Made by a program: the position numbers and the translations under genes | Assembly: GCA_964304625.1 (NCBI GenBank) | Contig: OZ199839.1 | Location: 11,252,847-11,316,846 of the forward strand | Origin: Kudoa neothunni | Lineage: Eukaryota; Animalia; Cnidaria | DNA: 64,000 nucleotides | Reading direction: 5' to 3' | Notes under the pieces: generated by a model | The model's input: the letters and a program-made list of their open reading frames with translations, nothing else | Databases searched by the model: none | Told to the model about the DNA's origin: nothing | Shown: piece by piece, positions 34,263 through 54,600 of the stretch | Position numbering within the stretch: the stretch's first letter is position 1 | Layout: every line of letters begins with the position of its first letter

Positions 34263-35984
34263 TCAAGTTGCTCTATTACAGTATTCGTCGAAAAGATGTT
34301 GATCGATAGCAAACTTCTCAAAACAAGATTTAAAGGAATCCCAAGTGCATAAATTCGAAGATATTCCTTGATTTATGTTGGATTTAGACGTCACAGAACA
34401 ACATTCCATTGGCGTTGCTATTTCGTTCACATAAAGTGATATATATTTCTACAACCGAATGAGAACTTTTCAATGCTAGTAAGTTAATTAATTAATTACC
34501 TGTTGAGTTACTTTGTGTTTCAACATAAGGAAAATGACATTGTTGTTCATTGGCGCGATTTTACCGTATCTTCTAAGTCGTTGAACATGGAGGGATTTAT
34601 CGATAGAGCTTACATTCATTGGAAAATCAATGTATATTTCGCCATTACCATTGAGCTGATTCATGTAAGAAGGTATAGCTTTCAGCAATCCCTATCATAG
34701 GTTGCAATAATTTAGGGTACCACATACAATCGCATGGTAGAATACAATCAACGGGAGGGTGGTTTCAGCGTGGGCAAAATCAGCATAAAAATTAATGTAA
34801 TGTTCATCTTTGTTGTTAGCTGCTTGGCTCATCCGTTTGTAGATATGCCCAAATAGAGGGACAGACATTATGGAGTTGGATTGAAACGAATGACCCAGTT
34901 TGTAATCAGATAAAACGTCGAACAAAAATTCCATCAACAACAGATCGTTACGAGAAAATAATTTACAAAACGGACTTTTCTGAGGATTTCGATCAAATAA
35001 CAACACTTGAAATCGACATATATCATACAGCGAACGAATATTTGTCATAGTTAAATTGATTGTTTTATCGTATGTGTGTGGACTATTCAGGCGAGATCTG
35101 ATGCGGTAGATCATCTCTTGATATGCTTCACTTTGATTAAATTGTTTTTCCACATTAGTGAGAATTTCTTTGTGTGATTGGTACGCATTACAATAGTTAA
35201 AAAATTTCAATTGTTTTCCATCGTTACAACTTCCATCAATGGTCATGTCGATGCCGAGGAAATTGCTGTAAAATCCTTGTTGAAATAATGCCATACTCTG
35301 TTTGCATCTTTGTGCACAGGTGGTACTGAAATGTAGATGATTTGATAGTGGAGATTTATCGTGATGGGTTGAGTTTTGTAGCGTGTCTTTCAGCAACTGT
35401 CCTATATCAATAAATTTTATTGTATTAAATGCCGCTTCAAGATGGCTAATTGTTCTAGTGATTTTTAATAAAAAATACGTTTCTGTTATTTACACAATAT
35501 CATCTTTAATTAACCCACATACCATTGATGACAATTAATAAATAGACGAATATGGAAAATTATAAATTTTTCAACAACTTTCTAAATATTCAATAAGTTA
35601 ACTACCTATTCGTTTCCCAAAGAGATACTGATCCACAAACCCAGGATAAGCTAATTCACTTGTAGCCCCGTTTTTAACGAATTGGTCAATGTCAATTAAG
35701 CTAGCTAATGGGTGTTTTAGGTGCGACAACAGGTCACTTAGTTGTCTCATGTATCCGATAGTTTTGCTGCCTGGATACCGTGCCCCATGTCTACTCAACA
35801 AATACACCATCTCAACTTGATAACCAGCTGGAAGATGGATTTGTTGAGGAACTTTTGATTGAATATCCTTTAACTTTCTATAAGAACTCTTGGTGCCGTA
35901 GAATATATCATTAAATTGATGATCAACCGATCCTCTCACACCCAGCACATAATTTAGTAAAATTGTTAAACAAATCCACATCAT
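34263..35984 (-). CDS. MINPP1: Multiple inositol polyphosphate phosphatase 1 (histidine phosphatase, branch 2)
   Basis: Signal peptide, FYGTKSSY, RHGARYP catalytic motif, LYDICRF, SPFCKLFS, FAHAETTLP, IAPMNNNVIF, LYVNE. The exon junctions at about 35400-35600 and the exact C-terminus are not fully resolved. Confidence 0.9.
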
Positions 35985-37875: not shown

Positions 37876-39980
37876 CCTTCTAAATCACTTGAAAATTTAC
37901 GCCCTCCGAGTAAATTTAGGGCATTTTTCACCGAATATTTTTTTGGATCAAACAATTTAGAATATAAAAATAATTATTTTTGAAAACTTTGAAAATTTTA
38001 TATCGATTAAATTTGAAATTATAGACCAACATTTCTAGCTAAGCTTGCATGAACGTACGTGCGCACAAATCAAAATTTATCGTCTGGTGTAGAATGTGTT
38101 GGCAATACATTTACAAGATTCTATTTTCTAATTTAGGAAAGCTTTTAAGTAGCATTAGAATTATTTTATTAAATATAAGAACAAAATAATAATAATAAAG
38201 ACAACATTGACAAAGTTATCCGTTAAAACAATTAAAACAAACATGATTGGAATGGAATTTGCAGAAAGATGAAGCACGAATATCGCATTTTATTTTGGTG
38301 CTTCTGTCATATTTCCTATCGTAAAATCGACATATCCCATAACTAATTTGTATAGTTATAACAGAGAAGTCTTCACTAGCTATCATATTTTGTTTCCGCC
38401 TCAAAGGTAGTCGATGCGTCAATTGGGTTGCCATCCTTTTCAAAAATTCCCTCCTGAGTAATTTTGAAGAAAGTAGGAAATTTTTGTATATATAAAACGT
38501 ATTAATCAGACTGATATCAACCATGTTAAAGAAAACAATTAACTGCCAACGAAAAGTTATTCGTCTAACATTTATTGCTGCCAGTAATCTGGGAATCGTA
38601 TCGACTCCATGTCATACTGCATTATAATGCATTATGACATCGGGTTTAAATGGCTCTTCTTTTGATATTTGGGTGTTTATTGAGGAGAAACAAAGCATAT
38701 AAACAAGGCTATCTCTCCGAGGCAGATATCTTAATATCATGTTTTTGTTATTAAAAACAAAAAGAGATGAATGAAGAGGAGTCGTTCTATTTGGTCTCAA
38801 ATATGGCGGTATCTCCCTCCTATTTGAATACATCTTTCGAACAATCTTAGTTTTTTTTTGTAACAATTCATCTGATAATTCAATTGACGTGAAAAAATTA
38901 TCGCCTACTACATTTCGACGAGAACGTTCAAATGGTTCGGCTAATTTTAAAGCAATATTCCACCCAACATTTACAGTCCTTGTATCATTTCGAGATCGCT
39001 TCCCCAAATAGCCAATCGCGTTGCAAACAAATGTTAACGTTGGGTCAATTATTGAAAAAAACTTAAGGCAATGTTTTGAAAGCATTTTTGTCATATATTG
39101 TTTGAATTTACAACGACTTCTAAAAGCCACTAGTTGCTCGTCGATGCAAAAATTCTCGAAAGGTCGAAAACTCTGGATAAGCGAGTCAACCCGGATATCC
39201 CTGAGTTCACGAATGTGGCAAAATTTATCTAATGTTTTTCTTGTCTCTCGTGTTTCAAAATCGTCGAAATGAAGAGCTCTCTTGATTTGTCGGAATCTAA
39301 TTAAAGAAAATAGATCACGATAAACTTGTCTTCCCTCTTCTAACCCAAACAATTCTTTGACTGGTTGTTGATTACCGTCAAATATCCCCATTAACAAGAA
39401 ATATCGGATGAATCCATCGAATTTTACAGTATCTAATTGTTTCCAAGCATCACCCAAAAAATTTTTTTTGCTATATTAATTTGTATATTTTAAAATTAAA
39501 TCAAATATTTCCTGGCGAAAAAACACTTTAAACGTGTCAATAATTTCATTTGCATTCTACAAAACAAAAGGTGAAACACCAGTACGACTGGTCAAAATAT
39601 TTTCGGCTGTCATTCTAGAAATCGAGGGTCTTTCAATTGTCCACAAGATTCCATTCTTATCTATTAGAGAATCAGATGGATGATTGATTTCAACTTCCGA
39701 GTTATCTGATGACGTATCACGCAAACAGCAATGATCCATGTCTGAAGAATCAGTATCGGAGCAGCTGCCGCTATATTCACTCGAGCTCATGCCCATTTTA
39801 CCAATGACCGACTGACGCGTGCACACTGGAATATTCCCAGTAATATTTGTTGATTTGAACAATAATTCGTCGACGTAAGTGTATCAAATATACCAGAAAA
39901 ATATTATTTTTTATTCGGGACAATTTAGTCAAAAAAAATATTGGGTGGAAAAATCTCCTAATTTTACTCGTAGGGTATTT
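37876..39980 (-). mobile_element. Near full-length piggyBac transposon
   Basis: TTAA|CCTTCTAAAT end at 37872-37885. Subterminal repeat at about 37891-37944 is inverted at about 39932-39980. Contains a transposase pseudogene. The other terminus was not clearly identified. Confidence 0.85.
38216..39790 (-). pseudogene. piggyBac (PGBD4-like) transposase with nonsense mutations
   Basis: IDEQLVAFRSRC, GDNFFTSIEL, HYNAV*HGVD and a C-terminal Cys/His-rich domain. The three ORF pieces share one frame and are separated only by stop codons. Confidence 0.92.
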
Positions 39981-40747: not shown

Positions 40748-41584
40748 ATGAGATTTATGATAGCAAAACTTTGGTTGGCTTATAGTATATATTATAGTGT
40801 ATATCGTTGTAATCTCGTTTAGATGTGTTTATGCTGGTGGTAGAAGCTAATATACACAAAGCAATATAAAATTTATAATAATTTTTTCATATATTTTTTT
40901 ATTTTAATCTATTTAGTTATGGTTATCAAGGAATGCCACCCTCCAAATCTATGTGTCCTTGCTATACTTACCATCCAGTAGCCTATTTGATTCTACTAAA
41001 GTATTTCGTGTATTATCACTGTGATCATAATCACCATAAAGAATGCAGTTATTTCCAAAGCGTTTACTAATAAAGAACTATTGATTGATAGCTATCCATA
41101 TCCACAGAAAATCTGTTCAGAATTTGCAAAATGTGAAGGGCATTTTAGTATTGATTACAACTAATTTTTATGATAATTAATCCCAATAAAAGTTAAGAAT
41201 TTTAAAATTCCAATATTTTGTTGGCCTTGTATCGTAATTAATACATTATATGAATATAGTTTGATTTATTTTAAGAGTGTCCTCTACTTGGATTGTGTTG
41301 GTATAGAAACGCCAACTAATTCTATTATTCGTGATGTAAGGATTAAATGTTAATGAAATAAAACCAACGCTCTATCGTAGATGCAAGAAAAATGTCATAA
41401 AGATTCATTCTCCAAATGTATGGGATCAAAATTTTGTAAAGGTTTCCAAACAACCATGGATCATGGTATTTTATGTTATATTTTAATTATTTTCGTTTTT
41501 ATTTCAAATAGAGTTAAAATATTTTAATTCAATCAAAATTTAGAGGAACTCGATGATTATCACGCCATGATTTATGCAGGCTGA
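40748..41584 (+). CDS. Small secreted 8-cysteine protein, paralog 1 (absent from ORF track)
   Basis: Exons 40748-40784, 40823-40860, 40917-41000, 41042-41147, 41193-41233, 41276-41335, 41381-41465 and 41544-41584 (alternative last exon 41512-41543) give an open frame MRFMIAKLWLAYNVFMLVVEA...YPYPQKICSEFAKC...FCWPCISVLYLDC...QEKCHKDSFSKCMGSKFC. Confidence 0.85.
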
Positions 41585-43182
41585 AAGAGATGATGGCACC
41601 ACATCGCTAACTCATTATCATTAAGGGGAGAAAAAATAAATATCCTATTTTAAAAAAATACTAATACATACAATAAACATAAATATTTTGGCAATTATAC
41701 AATAATTTACCTATTTGTTCGTTCTGATTGAATTTCTAAAATTCATAACCTATTCTTGGAAGCTATTGAATTTCTATATAATTACCTGATAAAATGATAC
41801 ATCCATTAGCATTAATGTTTCTATGAAAAATTGCCGAAAACGCGCATTTTAATCACTTGAGAACAGTATGTTCATAGATTTTTCTACTAAAATTAATAAT
41901 TCAATTTTTCTTGAGCATTCTTCTACTAAAGTGGGAAAGTCTGATATTTTAAAAAAATATTCCTTAAATATCACACGATAACAAATAACTTAAAAATATG
42001 AAGAGGGCAACGCATATTTATTTTCGATCTTCAATAATCGTTCATGGAAAATATTCCCATGATCAATTTCTCGTATTAAATAAATTTTTGATATATTTAT
42101 ATTTACCTCCTTACCTATTCTATTATATATTTAATAAAAATATGTAAAATTATGCGTTGAATCTCGATTATATGAACGATTCGCTATTCAGAAATTTCTT
42201 TCCGGGTGATGAAATTCTCGTTTTAGACCTATCCATGTAGATGCGCTAATGTAATTTTTATAAAGTAATGCTCTTTTTATTACATATAATAAGTATATAA
42301 TATATTTTCAATAATTATTTCATGCTCTAAAGATAAAATTACGAATTAAGTCATGGTGTTTTCGAATGAATTCCTCAGTCCATTCAATAGCAATATTGAC
42401 AAATCTAACCACATAATATTAACTAATTAAAGTTCAAGGAGAGTGAAAATGAAATAAACTTCTTGAATTTATTAATGCATTTTATATTTGATGTTTGAAT
42501 GCAAAACATCAGTCGTCTTAATCTCGCATGAGCGATTTTGATTTGAATTGTTTTTTTTGTTTCAATTGAAAATTAAAACATATAAATATAAAATGAGTAT
42601 GTAACAAAATTTTTAATATAATGTTTTAGTTTATATATTTTTATAATGTGAATTGATCTTAATATGGAGTACATAATTTAAATTAAAAGGAGGGTAACAA
42701 CTAATTTATGATTTTTTAATTAAGTTTGCATACAAAACGTCTATCAAAACAACTTTGTGGAATTCAAAAACATTTTAATACACTGTCTAAAACGGTATAT
42801 ATTATCAACTAAAAATTTAATTTGAAACATACGTTATGTGTGATTGTTTGACATCAATATATTAAATCTGCCAATTTGTTTCTGTATAAAAATGAATACA
42901 CAACAACATACTGGTTTTACATTTATATAAATAGAAAAGAATGTGCTGAAAACGCAAACTGAGGAAAAGTCAAATTCATCGAATTACTTAGTTGTTTACC
43001 AGACTTATTTTATATTTGATTGCACACGAATTGCGTAATTTATTCTTGGAGCAGATTCAAATTACCTAGAGTCAGCGTATTAGGTACAAAACATTTTCGA
43101 TCGTAAAATTGTTTCCTCAGTCACATTTATGAGACATGCAACCTCTATCCGGGATGCCCTCCACTAGAAGAATGTTGGCTAA

Positions 43183-44253
43183 CCCTCTAACGATATTGAG
43201 GTCGAATCGACCCCCAGTTTAGTTGAACACCGTATAATTTTTTCTTCCTTAGTTCCAGTGTTCTTAAATTCAACATATTCTTTATAAATATATTTTTTTT
43301 GCACCTGAGGGAAAATTGGATAATTAAGGTTTTTTATGTAGTCAAAATTCAAAGGATACCCTCCAACGATAATTTGGGATCGATTCGACCCTATCTTTTT
43401 ATTTCGTCATTTTATACATTAATTTCATTAAATTTATTATGTGAGATATTAAAAAGATTTACCGGCAGAATTCTAAGGAAAATCCAAATTAATCCTTGAA
43501 CCAATCTTACACAACCTAATCGAACACTGCTCGTGCACACTTCCGGCTATTGATTGCATTAGGTAATATAAAATAGTTTTTTTCTTCAATAGTAATTTAG
43601 TATCGGGAGAATGTCTACGGATTCTGAATTTAATTTTTTATTTCATAACGATGAGTCTTCTGGTAGTGAATGTGAGGATGTTTCTCGAAAAACTGATGAC
43701 GACGATCTGGGAATATACGATACTTCATTGACTGGCAAATATGGATTAGTTTAGAATCTTACAAAAGAATCTACATCAAAAACACGCGCAAAAAATATTT
43801 TTTTAGCCCTCCCCACTGAGCTCAGCAATCTATACGACGTTGAGAGTAAAATCGATTTTTGATTGGTGTTATTTGTGGATTGTGCGAACGCCATTTTTGC
43901 AGTTACCATTCAGGTTGATGTTACATTAAATGTTTCCAAATTGAAAAAAATTAAACCAAGGGAAACAATATATTTCGTAAAGGCAGTTGCTATTACCACA
44001 CTAGCGTATAGTCCCATGTCAGGGCTGTCTATTGCCACGAAAACGAATTTCTCCATAACCATAGAATATTATATATCTCTGTTCAGATATTTTTTGAGAA
44101 CTTTTTATACCATTAAAATTCTAATTTTCATATGAAAATTCATTCGCCTAATTTTTGGCATTTGCAGCATATAACCGCGTATTTTTCACACTTGTTGTAA
44201 TAGTTACCTAGTTATTATTAAATATTTTATGATAAAATTATTTACTTAAAGAG
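43183..44253 (+). mobile_element. Internally deleted piggyBac derivative
   Basis: CCCTCTAACGAT...ggtcgaatcgacccc end with an internal repeat at about 43339-43373, a decayed acidic N-terminal fragment, and a C-terminal Cys-rich remnant ICGLCERHFCSYH (about 43870-43910). Right end tentative. Confidence 0.6.
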
Positions 44254-44549
44254 TTAAAAAATAACTAATGGATATCTTAATCACAACGTCGACTTCGCAA
44301 GTCATAATTGGGATCATATAATCATTGATTGAACTTCGAATATCTTAAGATATTACGATAAATAGAAAAAATTACGCACGGATGATTGACAGAAAACGAA
44401 TAAGCTTTATTATAATTCATGAATTTATAATTCAATTATGTAGTTTATTATTTTCCCTTTTCTTCCTCTGTTTGCGGTCACTCTAAACCCCCTTAGTCAT
44501 CATCTGCTTTAAACTTTTTAAAAAGTGTAAAATCCGCAAAAAATGTAGA

Positions 44550-45500
44550 TACACACACTGAAACTAAAACCTTAGTATTCCAGTAGATTTGGTTAATTTT
44601 AGATTGCCTGATAAATTAATTCACTGTGATTTAATTGGATCCCAATTCTTTTAAAATACAAATTAATATCCTCAGCGTTTAGCTGTCAACTCCAGTACGC
44701 ATTTTCTGATAATCCTCTTAATTTTTAACGATGATTATTTATTGAAAAATTTTTAGTATCAAATCTGTTAATTGTCGTGTGACATTGTATATAGAAAACA
44801 ATATCTCCCACTCAACAATTTGAAAACGTAATATTTACACATAAATAGTTTAGAATTCGGAGAATTATTTTTAAAGACTTTCAAATCTTTGCTGGTGATT
44901 GCAGAAAGTACCTTCTCCTTTATCGGTGACAGTCTAGATATTAATTCATTAATATACTAGGTTAAAATAACTTCTTTTTTATAAATAATACACGCACTAT
45001 TTATGACTCTCTTAATGGAAAATCGTTAACTGTTAGGTATTGGGGAACACTGAAGAAAGTTTAATGTAATTGAGAGTTTAAAAAATGAATAAAATATGAA
45101 TAGTGAGTTTTTATCGTGATCCCATAAATTTTAGGTTGCATCTACACAAAATAATTCTAGAAAAAAAGGAAGAAACCTTCATCTCATCATCTATAAATAT
45201 CATTGCACAACGATGATTCGCATCCCCAGTAAGAATTTTAACATCACAATTATGATCCAGAGTTAAAATCTTATAAAAATGGTTTATTTCATTACGTTAG
45301 GAAGATATATTTTTCGTATATTTATGGCCTTGGGCGTATTCATTTCACCTGTTTCTTGCTGAATTTTAGACTGCAACATTTTTTCACTAACAAATATATA
45401 AATTAATCCTTATGTTAATTTATTATTGCGTTCAAATTCACGTTGTGGCTGTACACTTGAAGTAAACCTGATTTGTTCTATGGTTACCTTGTAGGTGTAA
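44550..45500 (-). pseudogene. Decayed MULE (Mutator-like) transposase
   Basis: Minus-strand fragments FLELFCVDAT*NL (FPE.L.VDATY-like) and ITSKDLKVFKNNSPNSKLFMCKYYVFK (TDKD...FP.....C.FH-like). Confidence 0.5.
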
Positions 45501-47184
45501 ACATTTTACTTCATTTTTTTTCCATTTGAGCTGACTCCTACCTTAATGTGAGCCTGGTAGGTGCCTCACAAAGTTTTAGCCTCTCTTACACCCTTTGATC
45601 TATTACAACAATAGTCGCCAAAATAACAAATGAATTAAATAAAATAGTATCTAATCTTCCCATTAAATTATTCGTTTGAGTTCGTCTCTGCATGGTTGTA
45701 AATTAAATAATTTACCTAAGGAATGATACAAATTTTCGTTTCAGTTATCAATATTCTAGGTACTAACGTTTAACTAATTGTATTACTTATACGATTTCGC
45801 GATCTTATAATCTACCATGATAAAATTATTTAATGACTGTTTTCGTATTCTTTAAATCAGAGAAAAATATTTTTTGATAAATCACCATCAAAATAATTTA
45901 AATATTTAATCTCAATTAAGCAGGGTGAGAGATATTTTATTCTACTGCGTGTGTCGATTGAAATTTGATGTTGAAATACTGTATATAACTAGTGTTGGAG
46001 AAAATATGATTAAAGTTGGTATTTATTTAAATGGATTTTCTGGAAAGTTCATTAGATTTAAAATTATGACGATTATGATAATGAAGCATGGTTATTTGAA
46101 TTTCTCTAACGCCATATGCCGTAACGACAGGAAAATACTTCGAAAATATAAATTGTTGAATTTAAACGTTAAATAAAAAATAATTGAACCTAACTAATGG
46201 CCATATAGATTATTTTGATACAGTAATTACATCTTTACTTATCAACATGGGTTTACCAAATAATGTATATTATTATTATTATTATTATTATTCTATAATT
46301 ATGGTTGTAATAATTGATAATTTTGGCAAGTCATAAAAACCAAAAAGAAAATTTCTACAATTTAATCAATGCAGAAACCCTTTTTAGAAAGACCTTAACT
46401 TTAAATAATTTTTGAGAATATTAATAATTTTATATACAAATAAAAAATTTTATTCAACGATATAATATACATTCTACAAATGTGAAAAGAAAAGGATCGA
46501 GTAAATTTGATATGGCTTTTATTTCTACATAAACTTTTTCATTATAATTTTTTGTATTTATAAATCCTTAAAATAAGAAAATGATTGTTTCTAAAATTAA
46601 ATACAATCCTCAAATTTTTCTGCTTTACGCCAAAACTAATTTTTATCCAGGGTTCTGTTGTGAAGGAAATTATAGTCCGAGATTACATACGATTTCTGTC
46701 TAGACAATACACACAATTGTCACCAGACATCTTTATTTAAATGATTATGTAATATTTATTGAATATTTTTCATTATCTATGATTAAAATAGTGCAAACCA
46801 TACACAACAAGCATCAGAAAAATGGTCTATACATGTTTGCGTTGGGAAATAATTTTTAAAAGATAATTTATTAGTCAAATAAAACTATTATATATTAAAT
46901 TGTCTAATTGTGAATTTATTTTTAAAGCAGAAATAATCATTTGATTACAACAAAAATTATCATTAAAAAGGAAATAAAATGACAGTGAATATCAATACTT
47001 TAATCGTTTTTAATGGTTTAACAACAAAAATTTATATTGAATAAAATTAAAATTATATCTCCTCATTATCTGAAAATAATTATTTTATATAATTAATAAT
47101 AAATATAATCAAATAAGTTATCGAAAGATAACAAATATAAAAAAGTAAGATCGGATAATTAGCTCAGGTAATAAATAAATATAA

Positions 47185-48064
47185 ATGGTTTTGTTAGAAG
47201 CATATATTATTCTGGCCATTAGTAAGTTTATGAATCAAAAACTATTCCACCATTTTTTAGATGTCATTTTCATGACCAGCACACAAGAAACTTCCGTAAA
47301 TGTTATTTAGTAATGCTAAGTCGTTCTTAATTAGAAACAACTGTATTCAGTTACTACTATCAGTAAATTCCACAAATCAAATCACAACTTCCTTGACGTA
47401 TATCTCTAGAAAATCTATGCTAAAATCATCGGAAGTAATAAATGAATAAATTCATGAAATAGACAATAAAATAGAGAAAAATCATTGCAATGGCATTGAA
47501 AAATAAAACGCGTTTTGTTGGTGAATATCCGTATCAAGGTCATATTTGCTCAAGATTCGCCGTTTGTAATGGATCATTGAGTAAAAGTTTAACGTATTTA
47601 TTTATATTTTCACCAAATGTCAAATTATAGTCGAAAAAATCAAGTCACCATCACACTGTCTTCCATGTTATGTATAATCTAATAGATTGAAAATACATCA
47701 TTTAATTTCCCTAGATTGTGAAATTTTTGGATTGTATTGCAATCAGTACCTCAATTAATTCAACAAATACTCATGTAAGACGAATAACTGTTTGTTTTAT
47801 AAAATAAATTGCTGTTTTAAAAAAACCGATTCGTAATTTTGACTCAGGAACAATCCCGATGCTATCATGAATCAGAACGTAAGTGTATGAGATCCGAATT
47901 TTGCGGAAATCTGCATAGAAGTATCCTTCTTTAAACCCCCAAAAATCCAACTACTTATAATAATTATTATTATACAATGCAATATTTTAGTTATGGATCT
48001 TATTTACTCAGAATTGAACCAGATCGATGGTGTAGCAGAATCCACCGATAATAACACTGAATAA
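47185..48064 (+). CDS. Small secreted 8-cysteine protein, paralog 2 (absent from ORF track)
   Basis: Exons 47185-47221, 47261-47295, 47351-47434, 47475-47580, 47631-47671, 47715-47774, 47848-47920 and 47991-48064. Frame MVLLEAYIILAINVIFMTST...YPYQGHICSRFAVC...HCLPCYIVKFLDC...QSRCYHESERKCMRSEFC...NNTE*. Exons 1, 3, 4, 5 and 6 have the same lengths as in paralog 1. Confidence 0.88.
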
Positions 48065-51639: not shown

Positions 51640-54600
51640 ATGATTTCAATGATTGGATGTATATGGGTATTTCTGCTTTTTACATCAAGTAAAATTAAAT
51701 CATATAAAAATATGTCTTATCCATTTTTAGCTGAATGTTTAAAATATATTTATACAAACTTTGATCATCTTGCTGACAGCCGTCTGATGTTTACCGATCT
51801 TCCAGGAAATGTGTCTGCAGGCACCTTCATTACCGCTATTGAAGGTGTCCTAAGCAGGAAAGAAATAATTAAAGAAGATTGTAGGAGCATTAATCGTCAT
51901 CGTGAATGTGAATTTGGCACAACTCATGTGGATGTACATGGAACTGGTGATTTATTTTTAAAAGTTAATGAAAATGGAAAGAAAAGAGTATACAGAATAA
52001 ACTCTCGTAAAAAATTTTAAAAATTCATATATCTTTAAATTTAATCATAGAACCCATTCAAAATAATAAAAAGGTGATAATTTCGGTCAAGGATCACTTT
52101 ATCCAAATTAATAAAACTGATGACACTATGAAAGGAAATCCATATTTAGAAATTTTAATGAACAATAAAGTTTTGAAATCTACAAAACATGGAAGCGTAT
52201 CTACAGTGGATACACAAAAAAAGTCTATTTCTTTTGAAATAGGAAAGATTGGAACGGAAGATGCAATTTATGAGGTTATACACGATCCAGCATTACCAAC
52301 GTATCAATTTAGTTCTGTATTCTCCTACTCGGATCAAACTAATGGTTATAAAGTTGAGGGCATTTTAAGAGACGATGGAAATGATGAAATTTTTTTTAAT
52401 TACTATCCATATAAAAGTGATTTATGTTTATATGAGATGAAAGGTGGGATACGTTCTTCTTCATATACTAATGTATGTGGGAGATATAAATGTATCAATT
52501 TCTGTAGTGATTTTCACTTCGGAAAAGTTCTTCCGGATGGTTCTCGTATGACAAAAATGAGAGTAACACTTTCAAGAACAGGGAGAAAAAATGAAATTAC
52601 TTTTCCAAGTAAAAATAATATATTTAACATGATGTAGTTTTAATTTTTTAGCTCATAAAAGTTTTTACTCCGTTTGTGGTGATGTTGGTTTAATTCTTTC
52701 AACTGAAGGAAAAATAGAACAATGGATAAATACAGAAAATAATTGCGAAAAAATTAAAGTCAAACCATTTGACTACAGAAGTACGCAATTGTCCTTCAAA
52801 GAATCCCAACAACTCTGTTCTAGCGGGAAGGTTGTCCCTGGAAATTTTATCATTGAGTATCAGCCCAAGTCAGATAAATTCGTTTATATTTGTGACCTAA
52901 GTATTTTATTACAATGATTCAATTTTATTATTACTTTGATAGAAAAAAGACGGTTTCATTATGAGATAATAGAAGGTGTGAATATGATTCACATTTTTCA
53001 TCACGACGTGCATTTTATTAGTAGTCAAGCAAAATCGAAAGAATCAATTGCGTCAGGAGAAGAAACTATGTGTAGAGTGATGATTTCATCACACGCAAAT
53101 TTGAATTATGTGCCTGCGAATTGTGACTCATACGGATCACTGTGTTACGATCGTTGTGATGGTACCTTTGATGTGATCGGATTAAAATCAAATATGAACT
53201 ATTTCATAAAAATTGAATCATTGGGATATTATTCCGATTTTAGATTTACTGGAACTAAATCTTTGAAAAGTATAATATATTGTTGAAAATAATTAATAAT
53301 TTTTTTAGACGATCTTAGTCCAGAAATAAGATTTAATCAAAGTAACGGCTTGAGACAAATAGTTTTGCAATTCAAACACCATGTGAGACAGTCTGAAGTA
53401 ACCAATGGATTATCTTGCCTGATTGTAATGAGAGAAATGATTTCCACTTCAAGCACCAAATATTTCAAAATATGTGGAGAAAATATTTACTGCGTTCTAC
53501 CCTGCAACGATATGGTTCATCAATTTCCGTCAAACAAAGATTACATCATATATTCGTTAAAAGTTCTAGGAATGATGAATGAATTCATCGATCATCAAAA
53601 TGTTTGTAAGGCTCACCAAATTATTATAAATCATGAGTTTAATCATCAATTTTTTAGATTATTCACATAAAAATATCCAGCATAGCGCAGTTAAAAATAA
53701 AAATATTATGGCGTTCAACAAATCCAAATATACTACGTCACCTAAAGCCGTCGAGCAAGTAATTCGTGAGGCAGTCGAAGAATATAATGAAATAAGCTTC
53801 AAAAAAAAATTCCCGTATAAACAATACAATAAGAATTTGGATCCAATTGCTTCTAACAACAATAAGAAAATACAATATTCAACAACTGGATATATTAAGA
53901 AGATGCAGCAGAAAGGATTCCTTGTAGCTGAAAAGGAAGCTGCCCTACCCCCTGCACCACCTTCCAAACCAGATTCACCCTCTACACCTGATTTCTCACG
54001 TAAATTTATTTTAACGATTGAATAAAGGAATATTTTATTTATGGTGATGATTTTCTATATTACTTTTTTAAATTTATTTCTAATTTAACTATATTTTATA
54101 TATTATGTTTTTCTAAATGAAAGTTTATCAATATATGGCTAGATAAATTATATCTAGTTAATTTCTAAAGTAATTAATGTACTTAATTCAAGAATCTTTA
54201 TTTGAAAACATTGGAATTATTTTATTATTATAGAAAAACCATATTATTTTACTATATTTTTGCATAGCTATTAATTATTAAATATTCGGTATAATATTCA
54301 TAAATACGGTTTTAGCGGATAACAACTCAGCCGACGAACCATCTCCAAATATCACTGAAAGCCCCACTCCACCCGATTCAGGTTGATACACCCATATCTA
54401 TTATAAACAAATTTTTATTTCATCCATATTATATTAAATGTAATAAAATTAAATTATAAAAGAATCAAATGAAGTTTTAACCCAACCACCCGACGAAAAA
54501 TCAACCACACCTTCATCAAGCACTGCCAATACCGAAAATTCTGTAACTCACGTTCCCCCAGGTGATATTTATTGTTTTAGTTTTTTCTTAATATTTTCAT

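Follow-up and report, generated by a model that had tools for sequence, protein, structure and literature searches.

Paired eight-exon genes of Kudoa neothunni and the large cysteine-rich protein family to which they appear to belong

Small cysteine-rich secreted proteins build the capsule walls of cnidarians (minicollagens, NOWA), and the chemosensory proteins of insects (OS-D type) are small, secreted, and spaced C-x6-C-x18-C-x2-C. Among myxozoans, Sphaerospora molnari is reported to have VSP-like cysteine-rich surface proteins (bioRxiv 10.64898/2026.02.11.705288). Here we analyzed a 64,000-nucleotide (nt) stretch of the Kudoa neothunni genome (GenBank assembly GCA_964304625.1, contig OZ199839.1, positions 11,252,847 to 11,316,846; hereafter the window), in which two genes, g1 and g2, each encode a small protein with eight cysteines. 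An earlier note on this DNA had proposed that the pair defines a new protein family. Sequence comparison across the genome argues instead that the two are part of a large undescribed family of about 50 small proteins, not its founders, and that the family proteins are probably secreted.

Gene models of g1 and g2

We rebuilt both models by splicing the window at the coordinates listed here, and both reading frames were complete.

g1, 40748..41584, plus strand: eight exons, 156 amino acids, eight-Cys branch, uninterrupted from ATG to TGA
g1 exon 1, 40748..40784, plus strand: 37 nt, ends in phase 1; hydrophobic N-terminus
g1 exon 2, 40823..40839, plus strand: 17 nt; the least certain exon of g1
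g1 exon 3, 40917..41000, plus strand: 84 nt; NAT sequon and helix-like segment; aligns with the 84-90-nt exon 3 of paralogues
g1 exon 4, 41042..41147, plus strand: 106 nt; signature II..A..N...F.N.YP.....C.....C (Cys1, Cys2)
g1 exon 5, 41193..41233, plus strand: 41 nt; CWPC (Cys3, Cys4)
g1 exon 6, 41276..41335, plus strand: 60 nt; Cys5, restricted to the eight-Cys branch
g1 exon 7, 41381..41465, plus strand: 85 nt; C-x7-C-x5-C (Cys6-8)
g1 exon 8, 41544..41584, plus strand: 41 nt, TGA stop, short tail; top-scoring last exon in the splice enumeration
g2, 47185..48064, plus strand: eight exons, 169 amino acids, sister of g1
g2 exon 1, 47185..47221, plus strand: 37 nt; hydrophobic N-terminus; in the top-scoring chain
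g2 exon 2, 47261..47295, plus strand: 35 nt
g2 exon 3, 47351..47434, plus strand: 84 nt; NST sequon
g2 exon 4, 47475..47580, plus strand: 106 nt; family signature (Cys1, Cys2)
g2 exon 5, 47631..47671, plus strand: 41 nt; CLPC (Cys3, Cys4)
g2 exon 6, 47715..47774, plus strand: 60 nt; Cys5
g2 exon 7, 47848..47920, plus strand: 73 nt; C-x7-C-x5-C (Cys6-8)
g2 exon 8, 47991..48064, plus strand: 74 nt, TAA stop; acidic tail

The rebuilt models reproduced exactly the architecture that the earlier note had described: two intact but hidden genes of eight exons with no exon longer than 106 nt, equal lengths of exons 1, 3, 4, 5, and 6 (37, 84, 106, 41, and 60 nt), all phases equal, and hydrophobic N-termini, the last seen in hydropathy windows and by inspection. 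All 14 introns run from GT to AG, all 14 donors read GTA, and intron lengths span 38-78 nt, with a GC content of 34% in exons vs 20-24% in introns. An AATAAA lies 51 nt past the stop codon of g1, and another begins 1 nt past that of g2. The window itself is AT-rich eukaryotic DNA (24-36% GC) on contig C2 of a four-contig genome of 40,260,978 bases. The published K. neothunni assembly, based on yellowfin tuna data, comprises 40.2 Mb in three chromosomes and a mitochondrion, with a median intron of 49 bp and exon GC above intron GC (PMC12239612); the intron sizes and exon/intron GC of g1 and g2 agree with it.

Alignment of the two proteins by blastp gave 38.5% identity over 148 amino acids (E 7e-35), and the Smith-Waterman comparison gave z = 47, falling to 34 with the cysteines masked, so that the similarity is far above chance and the earlier statement that most other residues have diverged was overstated. 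The nonsynonymous difference between g1 and g2 (pN 0.43) is smaller than the synonymous one (pS 0.71), and eight other family pairs are similar; across family pairs pS ranges from 0.55 to 0.76 and pN from 0.25 to 0.43, with synonymous sites saturated. A nominal pN below pS shows constraint, not diversifying selection. By these comparisons g1 and g2 look like real, intact, anciently duplicated protein-coding paralogues.

Family copies in this genome and outside it

When exon 4 of g1 or g2 was used alone as a query, weak matches appeared on three chromosomes. Profile A1, built from 14 exon-4 sequences and searched against the whole 40.3 Mb genome, matched 59 places, 48 of them at our cut-off of E<=1e-3. 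Matches at this cut-off were distributed as follows.

C3, 5.05-5.17 Mb (minus strand) and 5.32-5.47 Mb (plus strand): opposed arrays, 33 matches
C3, near 9.2 Mb: 3 matches
C1: 9 matches
C2: 3 matches, namely g1, g2, and a third 82 kb beyond them

With 48 genomic matches to the exon-4 profile, g1 and g2 cannot be said to define the family; they form one small branch of it. The exon 4 of g2 is the best match of the family profile (65.6 bits) and that of g1 scores 57.8 bits. The two genes sit on C2, a different chromosome from the big C3 arrays.

We fetched 30 loci as 3-kb pieces. In 29 of the 30, exon 4 is exactly 106 nt long with AG and GT at identical borders, which provides independent support for the gene models. 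A 41-nt exon 5 encoding CxPC follows 39-64 nt past exon 4 in 25 of 29 loci, and its proline is invariant in all 25 of these regular loci. Family donors read GTA in 98% of cases and acceptors carry T at position -3 in 79% (TAG-type). Splice-score enumeration returned eight-exon chains for 22 loci, every one with a hydrophobic N-terminus (best 10-residue Kyte-Doolittle window within the first 30 amino acids, 1.7-3.3). In the family, most first exons are 28 or 37 nt long, the 37-nt form recurring in about 12 paralogues and in the metagenome homologue described below, exon 2 measures 35-44 nt and exon 3 84-90 nt, and the proteins span 150-195 amino acids. Both g1 and g2 have the eight-exon plan, the 106-nt phase 0-to-1 exon 4 with its signature (A7, F14, P19, C25, C31), the 41-nt exon 5, and the invariant CxPC. 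The sequon (NAT/NST) and the YPY that the earlier note singled out are indeed aligned between g1 and g2, but neither the sequon nor the second Y of YPY is a feature of the family. The principal evidence for genuine, constrained exons is that structure is conserved across copies with saturated synonymous sites.

Four loci keep the 106-nt exon 4, but no regular 41-nt CxPC exon 5 follows it where expected (L029, C1:11457848; L036, C3:5059110; L039, C3:5071271; L042, C1:14790066); these may be broken copies or variants. Loci L008, L023, and L049-L051 had been considered as intron-less paralogues and were rejected, their long frames being merely in-frame intron read-through. Two long open reading frames with weak profile matches were likewise set aside as distant intron-less relatives: they belong to another multi-copy family whose common part with this one is only an 18-residue motif (hhalign 88% on the motif; 56% and no confident extension with the joined family alignment).

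Outside this genome, profile A3, made of 30 exon-4 sequences, was compared with 1.84 billion representative proteins and returned one true match, a 35-amino-acid exon-4 fragment (P0001); a second match, to a low-complexity repeat protein, was rejected. P0001 derives from a 1,978-base ENA metagenome contig (L052, sample SAMEA5316497, 26% GC) that has no DNA match in the K. neothunni genome. The gene at L052:1265-1978 has exons of 37/44/87/106/41/51 nt, GTA donors throughout, and the eight-Cys pattern, and the contig stops within its exon 7. Because L052 lacks a DNA match here and shows the same plan, the family and its exon plan occur in at least one other organism, which gives the gene models cross-species support.

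Searches for described relatives returned little. A word search of proteins with five read-through pieces (68-93 amino acids) gave no matches, and Pfam gave no credible family for 14 exon-4 sequences or for exons 3, 6, 7, and 8 of g1 and g2, its rows being limited to two single-member exon-4 matches at chance level (YlaH, E 0.032; DUF3983, E 0.14). The exon-by-exon profile search of PDB reached a best E of 0.12, and for exon 4 the ESM Atlas returned unnamed clusters only. The Pfam and PDB searches are weak tests because the pieces comprise only 20-35 amino acids. In these exon-by-exon searches no Pfam, PDB, or protein-database family claimed g1 or g2, in line with the earlier note, which did not recognise the Cys pattern from any known family, and the K. 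neothunni genome paper makes no mention of cysteine-rich, secreted, or expanded families (PMC12239612).

Cysteine subtypes and the proposed role

The spacing C-x5-C-x13-C-x2-C-x7-C-x17-C-x7-C-x5-C reported earlier for the pair is present and aligned in g1 and g2, but the family core consists of six cysteines, not eight. Six-Cys proteins, encoded at 14 loci, follow C-x5-C, x13, CxPC, about x33, and C-x5-C; eight-Cys proteins are encoded at 11 loci, g1 and g2 among them. The extra cysteines of the eight-Cys branch fall at codon 7 of exon 6 and in exon 7, seven residues ahead of the last pair, and the six-Cys core (Cys1-4 and the last C-x5-C) is complete in both g1 and g2. Since the exon-6 cysteine and the first exon-7 cysteine always co-occur, we infer that they probably pair as one additional, fourth disulfide. 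In the maximum-likelihood tree g1 and g2 are sisters (support 90/82) on long branches, and the eight-Cys label needs a single change (77% support). The two genes retain the 60-nt exon 6 of the six-Cys type, and their last exons are short and atypical. All members examined of the C3 minus-strand array are eight-Cys; six-Cys members make up the C3 plus-strand array and the C1 cluster. The two big C3 arrays point away from each other and, as far as sampled, are sorted by subtype.

The protein layout suggests how such a molecule might be built. Exons 1 and 2 would encode a short hydrophobic N-terminal signal that targets each product to the secretory pathway. Two helix-like segments, one in exon 3 and one in the first half of exon 4, would open the mature domain (about 130 amino acids); a crude periodicity measure over the alignment favours helix there. 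A compact Cys framework is predicted to follow, with Cys1-x5-Cys2 in exon 4, CxPC between hydrophobic strand-like runs in exons 5-6, and C-x5-C in exon 7. Cysteines in neighbouring pairs would lock this domain, aided by a fourth disulfide in the branch of g1 and g2, and a variable tail would close each protein of about 160 amino acids. The framework is conserved while the rest varies, old tandem copies are numerous, and the predicted signal is of secretory type; together these features point to extracellular binding proteins, which would act at the surface of the parasite or where it meets the host. The effector, toxin, or ligand function that the earlier note proposed is a hypothesis. We consider it likely, with reasonable confidence, that g1 and g2 are disulfide-braced proteins of the secretory pathway with an extracellular binding role.

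The invariant CxPC raises the alternative that it forms a redox-active dithiol and that the proteins are small secreted thiol-disulfide exchange factors of thioredoxin type. Invariance of its proline in 25 of 25 regular loci and the hydrophobic, strand-like run before it do resemble thioredoxin, and a DsbF chain appears among the weakest PDB rows, but at E=1, a chance level. What follows CxPC is a strongly hydrophobic strand-like run (LVLY...) rather than the amphipathic helix of the thioredoxin fold, the remaining cysteines fall in neighbouring pairs typical of structural disulfides, and Pfam gives no match for any exon searched (exon 5, at 14 amino acids, is too short to scan). We regard a redox function as very improbable.

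A second alternative is that the family supplies structural material for the valve, polar-capsule wall, or matrix of the spore, cross-linked or hardened through cysteines and not facing the host. Cysteine-rich capsule-wall proteins of cnidarians offer a precedent, many family members have in common a strand-like C-terminus of alternating hydrophobicity, and the age and constraint of all pairs, with no recent bursts, would suit housekeeping structural genes equally as well as effectors. However, no model contains collagen-like, proline-rich, or minicollagen-type CxxxC repeats, the roughly 50 very diverged copies exceed what a structural role would need, and g1 and g2 themselves are without the common C-terminal strand motif. 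A structural role is unlikely, though it stands better than a redox one.

Several observations weigh against the proposal of disulfide-braced proteins with an extracellular binding role. Their signal peptides were judged from hydropathy alone, and the hydrophobic run of g1, of about 19-20 amino acids, could be a signal anchor. For g1, enumeration with position weight matrices only favoured a different first-exon chain. Its 17-nt exon 2, like the last exons of both genes, is without backing from paralogue lengths: paralogues mostly have 35-44 nt at the place of exon 2, and the 41-nt exon 8 of g1 falls below the usual family exon 8 of about 120 nt; the donor of g1 exon 2 is the sole GTA that fits the frame. 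The absence of a known relative rests on pieces of 20-35 amino acids only, and the selection estimates are crude because dS is saturated. On 41420-47419, a stretch picked to include intron 7 of g1 and introns 1 and 2 of g2, the three raw-read RNA runs with the species label gave 0, 2, and 0 reads, and a contig set gave 0. These libraries are evidently host-dominated, and a shortage of parasite RNA is likewise stated in the K. neothunni genome paper (PMC12239612).

Some of these points would also fit a third explanation, under which the pair would have no functional product, being silent relics or else models over-fitted by picking splice sites around stops in AT-rich DNA. The RNA runs lend no support to expression of the pair, g1 and g2 are absent from the public protein sets searched, the first exons of g1 are ambiguous under splice-score-only enumeration, and the family includes the four irregular or broken loci mentioned above. 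Yet, despite saturated synonymous divergence, the pair has kept its eight cysteines, its phases, the lengths of five exons, and 14 canonical introns; equal borders are found again in 29 of 30 paralogues and on the other organism's contig, and exon GC stands 10-14 points above intron GC. We give this explanation very little credence.

A broader version of the extracellular-binding proposal is tentative, and we lean against it as a whole. The family may represent an undescribed extracellular fold that accounts for roughly 1% of the parasite's genes, works where parasite and host meet in tuna muscle fibres, and is known from this parasite and one other AT-rich organism; the branch of g1 and g2 would then record scaffold evolution by addition of a fourth disulfide to a six-Cys core.

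Surroundings of the pair and comparison with known systems

Other features of the window lie on both sides of the pair. A piggyBac-type transposase open reading frame occupies 38612-39457 on the minus strand (Pfam DDE_Tnp_1_7, E 3.8e-38), and open frames at 38216-38524 and 39557-39862 lie on the same strand (span 38216-39883), about 0.9-1.3 kb upstream of g1. A further minus-strand frame, 34695-35396, encodes a histidine phosphatase branch-2 domain (Pfam His_Phos_2, E 6.6e-12). On the plus strand, a Cys-containing module (…DRKCLGI.GS.C..LP.C…) is present in two copies, at about 2165 and 10081, 8 kb apart. Downstream of g2 by 4 kb, a larger plus-strand gene (51640-54025) begins with an open reading frame at 51640 that has a signal-like start; it includes a 187-amino-acid frame (52074-52637, plus strand) with at least nine genome relatives at 28-59% identity, and further Cys-containing frames follow. 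This gene has the 18-residue motif F.N.YPYK..LC in common with family exon 4 (hhalign 88%) and no confident similarity beyond it, no Pfam match, and an AlphaFold model with a pLDDT (predicted local distance difference test) of 35.

Annotation of myxozoan genomes relies mainly on protein hints, so that lineage-specific genes with exons of 17-106 nt are invisible to it. What the window adds is a distinct eight-Cys branch with a likely extra disulfide and an exon plan conserved in a second organism, the latter serving as cross-species support for the gene models in place of RNA. About 50 small proteins of secretory type are a plausible place to seek how Kudoa stays unnoticed in muscle fibres, and the family could yield antigens for diagnosing a parasite responsible for spoilage of commercial tuna.

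Set against described proteins, the spacing of the family cysteines fits none of the patterns considered (thioredoxin fold, chemosensory protein, Kazal, WAP, TNFR, PSI, saposin). OS-D chemosensory proteins come close in kind: like the products predicted for g1 and g2, they are small secreted proteins with helix-like N-terminal parts and close Cys pairs that include C-x2-C. The two differ from them in spacing (x5, x13, x2), in their further cysteines, and in their strand-like segments, and the 14 exon-4 members are without a Pfam match, so the likeness is of kind only. The Giardia-type definition of VSP-like proteins does not extend to g1 and g2, which have one CxxC, 156-169 amino acids, and no hydrophobic C-terminal span. 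The VSP-like proteins of S. molnari resemble the Kudoa family in being lineage-specific, multi-copy, cysteine-rich, and proposed to face the host, and they bear signal peptides of the kind that hydropathy predicts for the Kudoa proteins.

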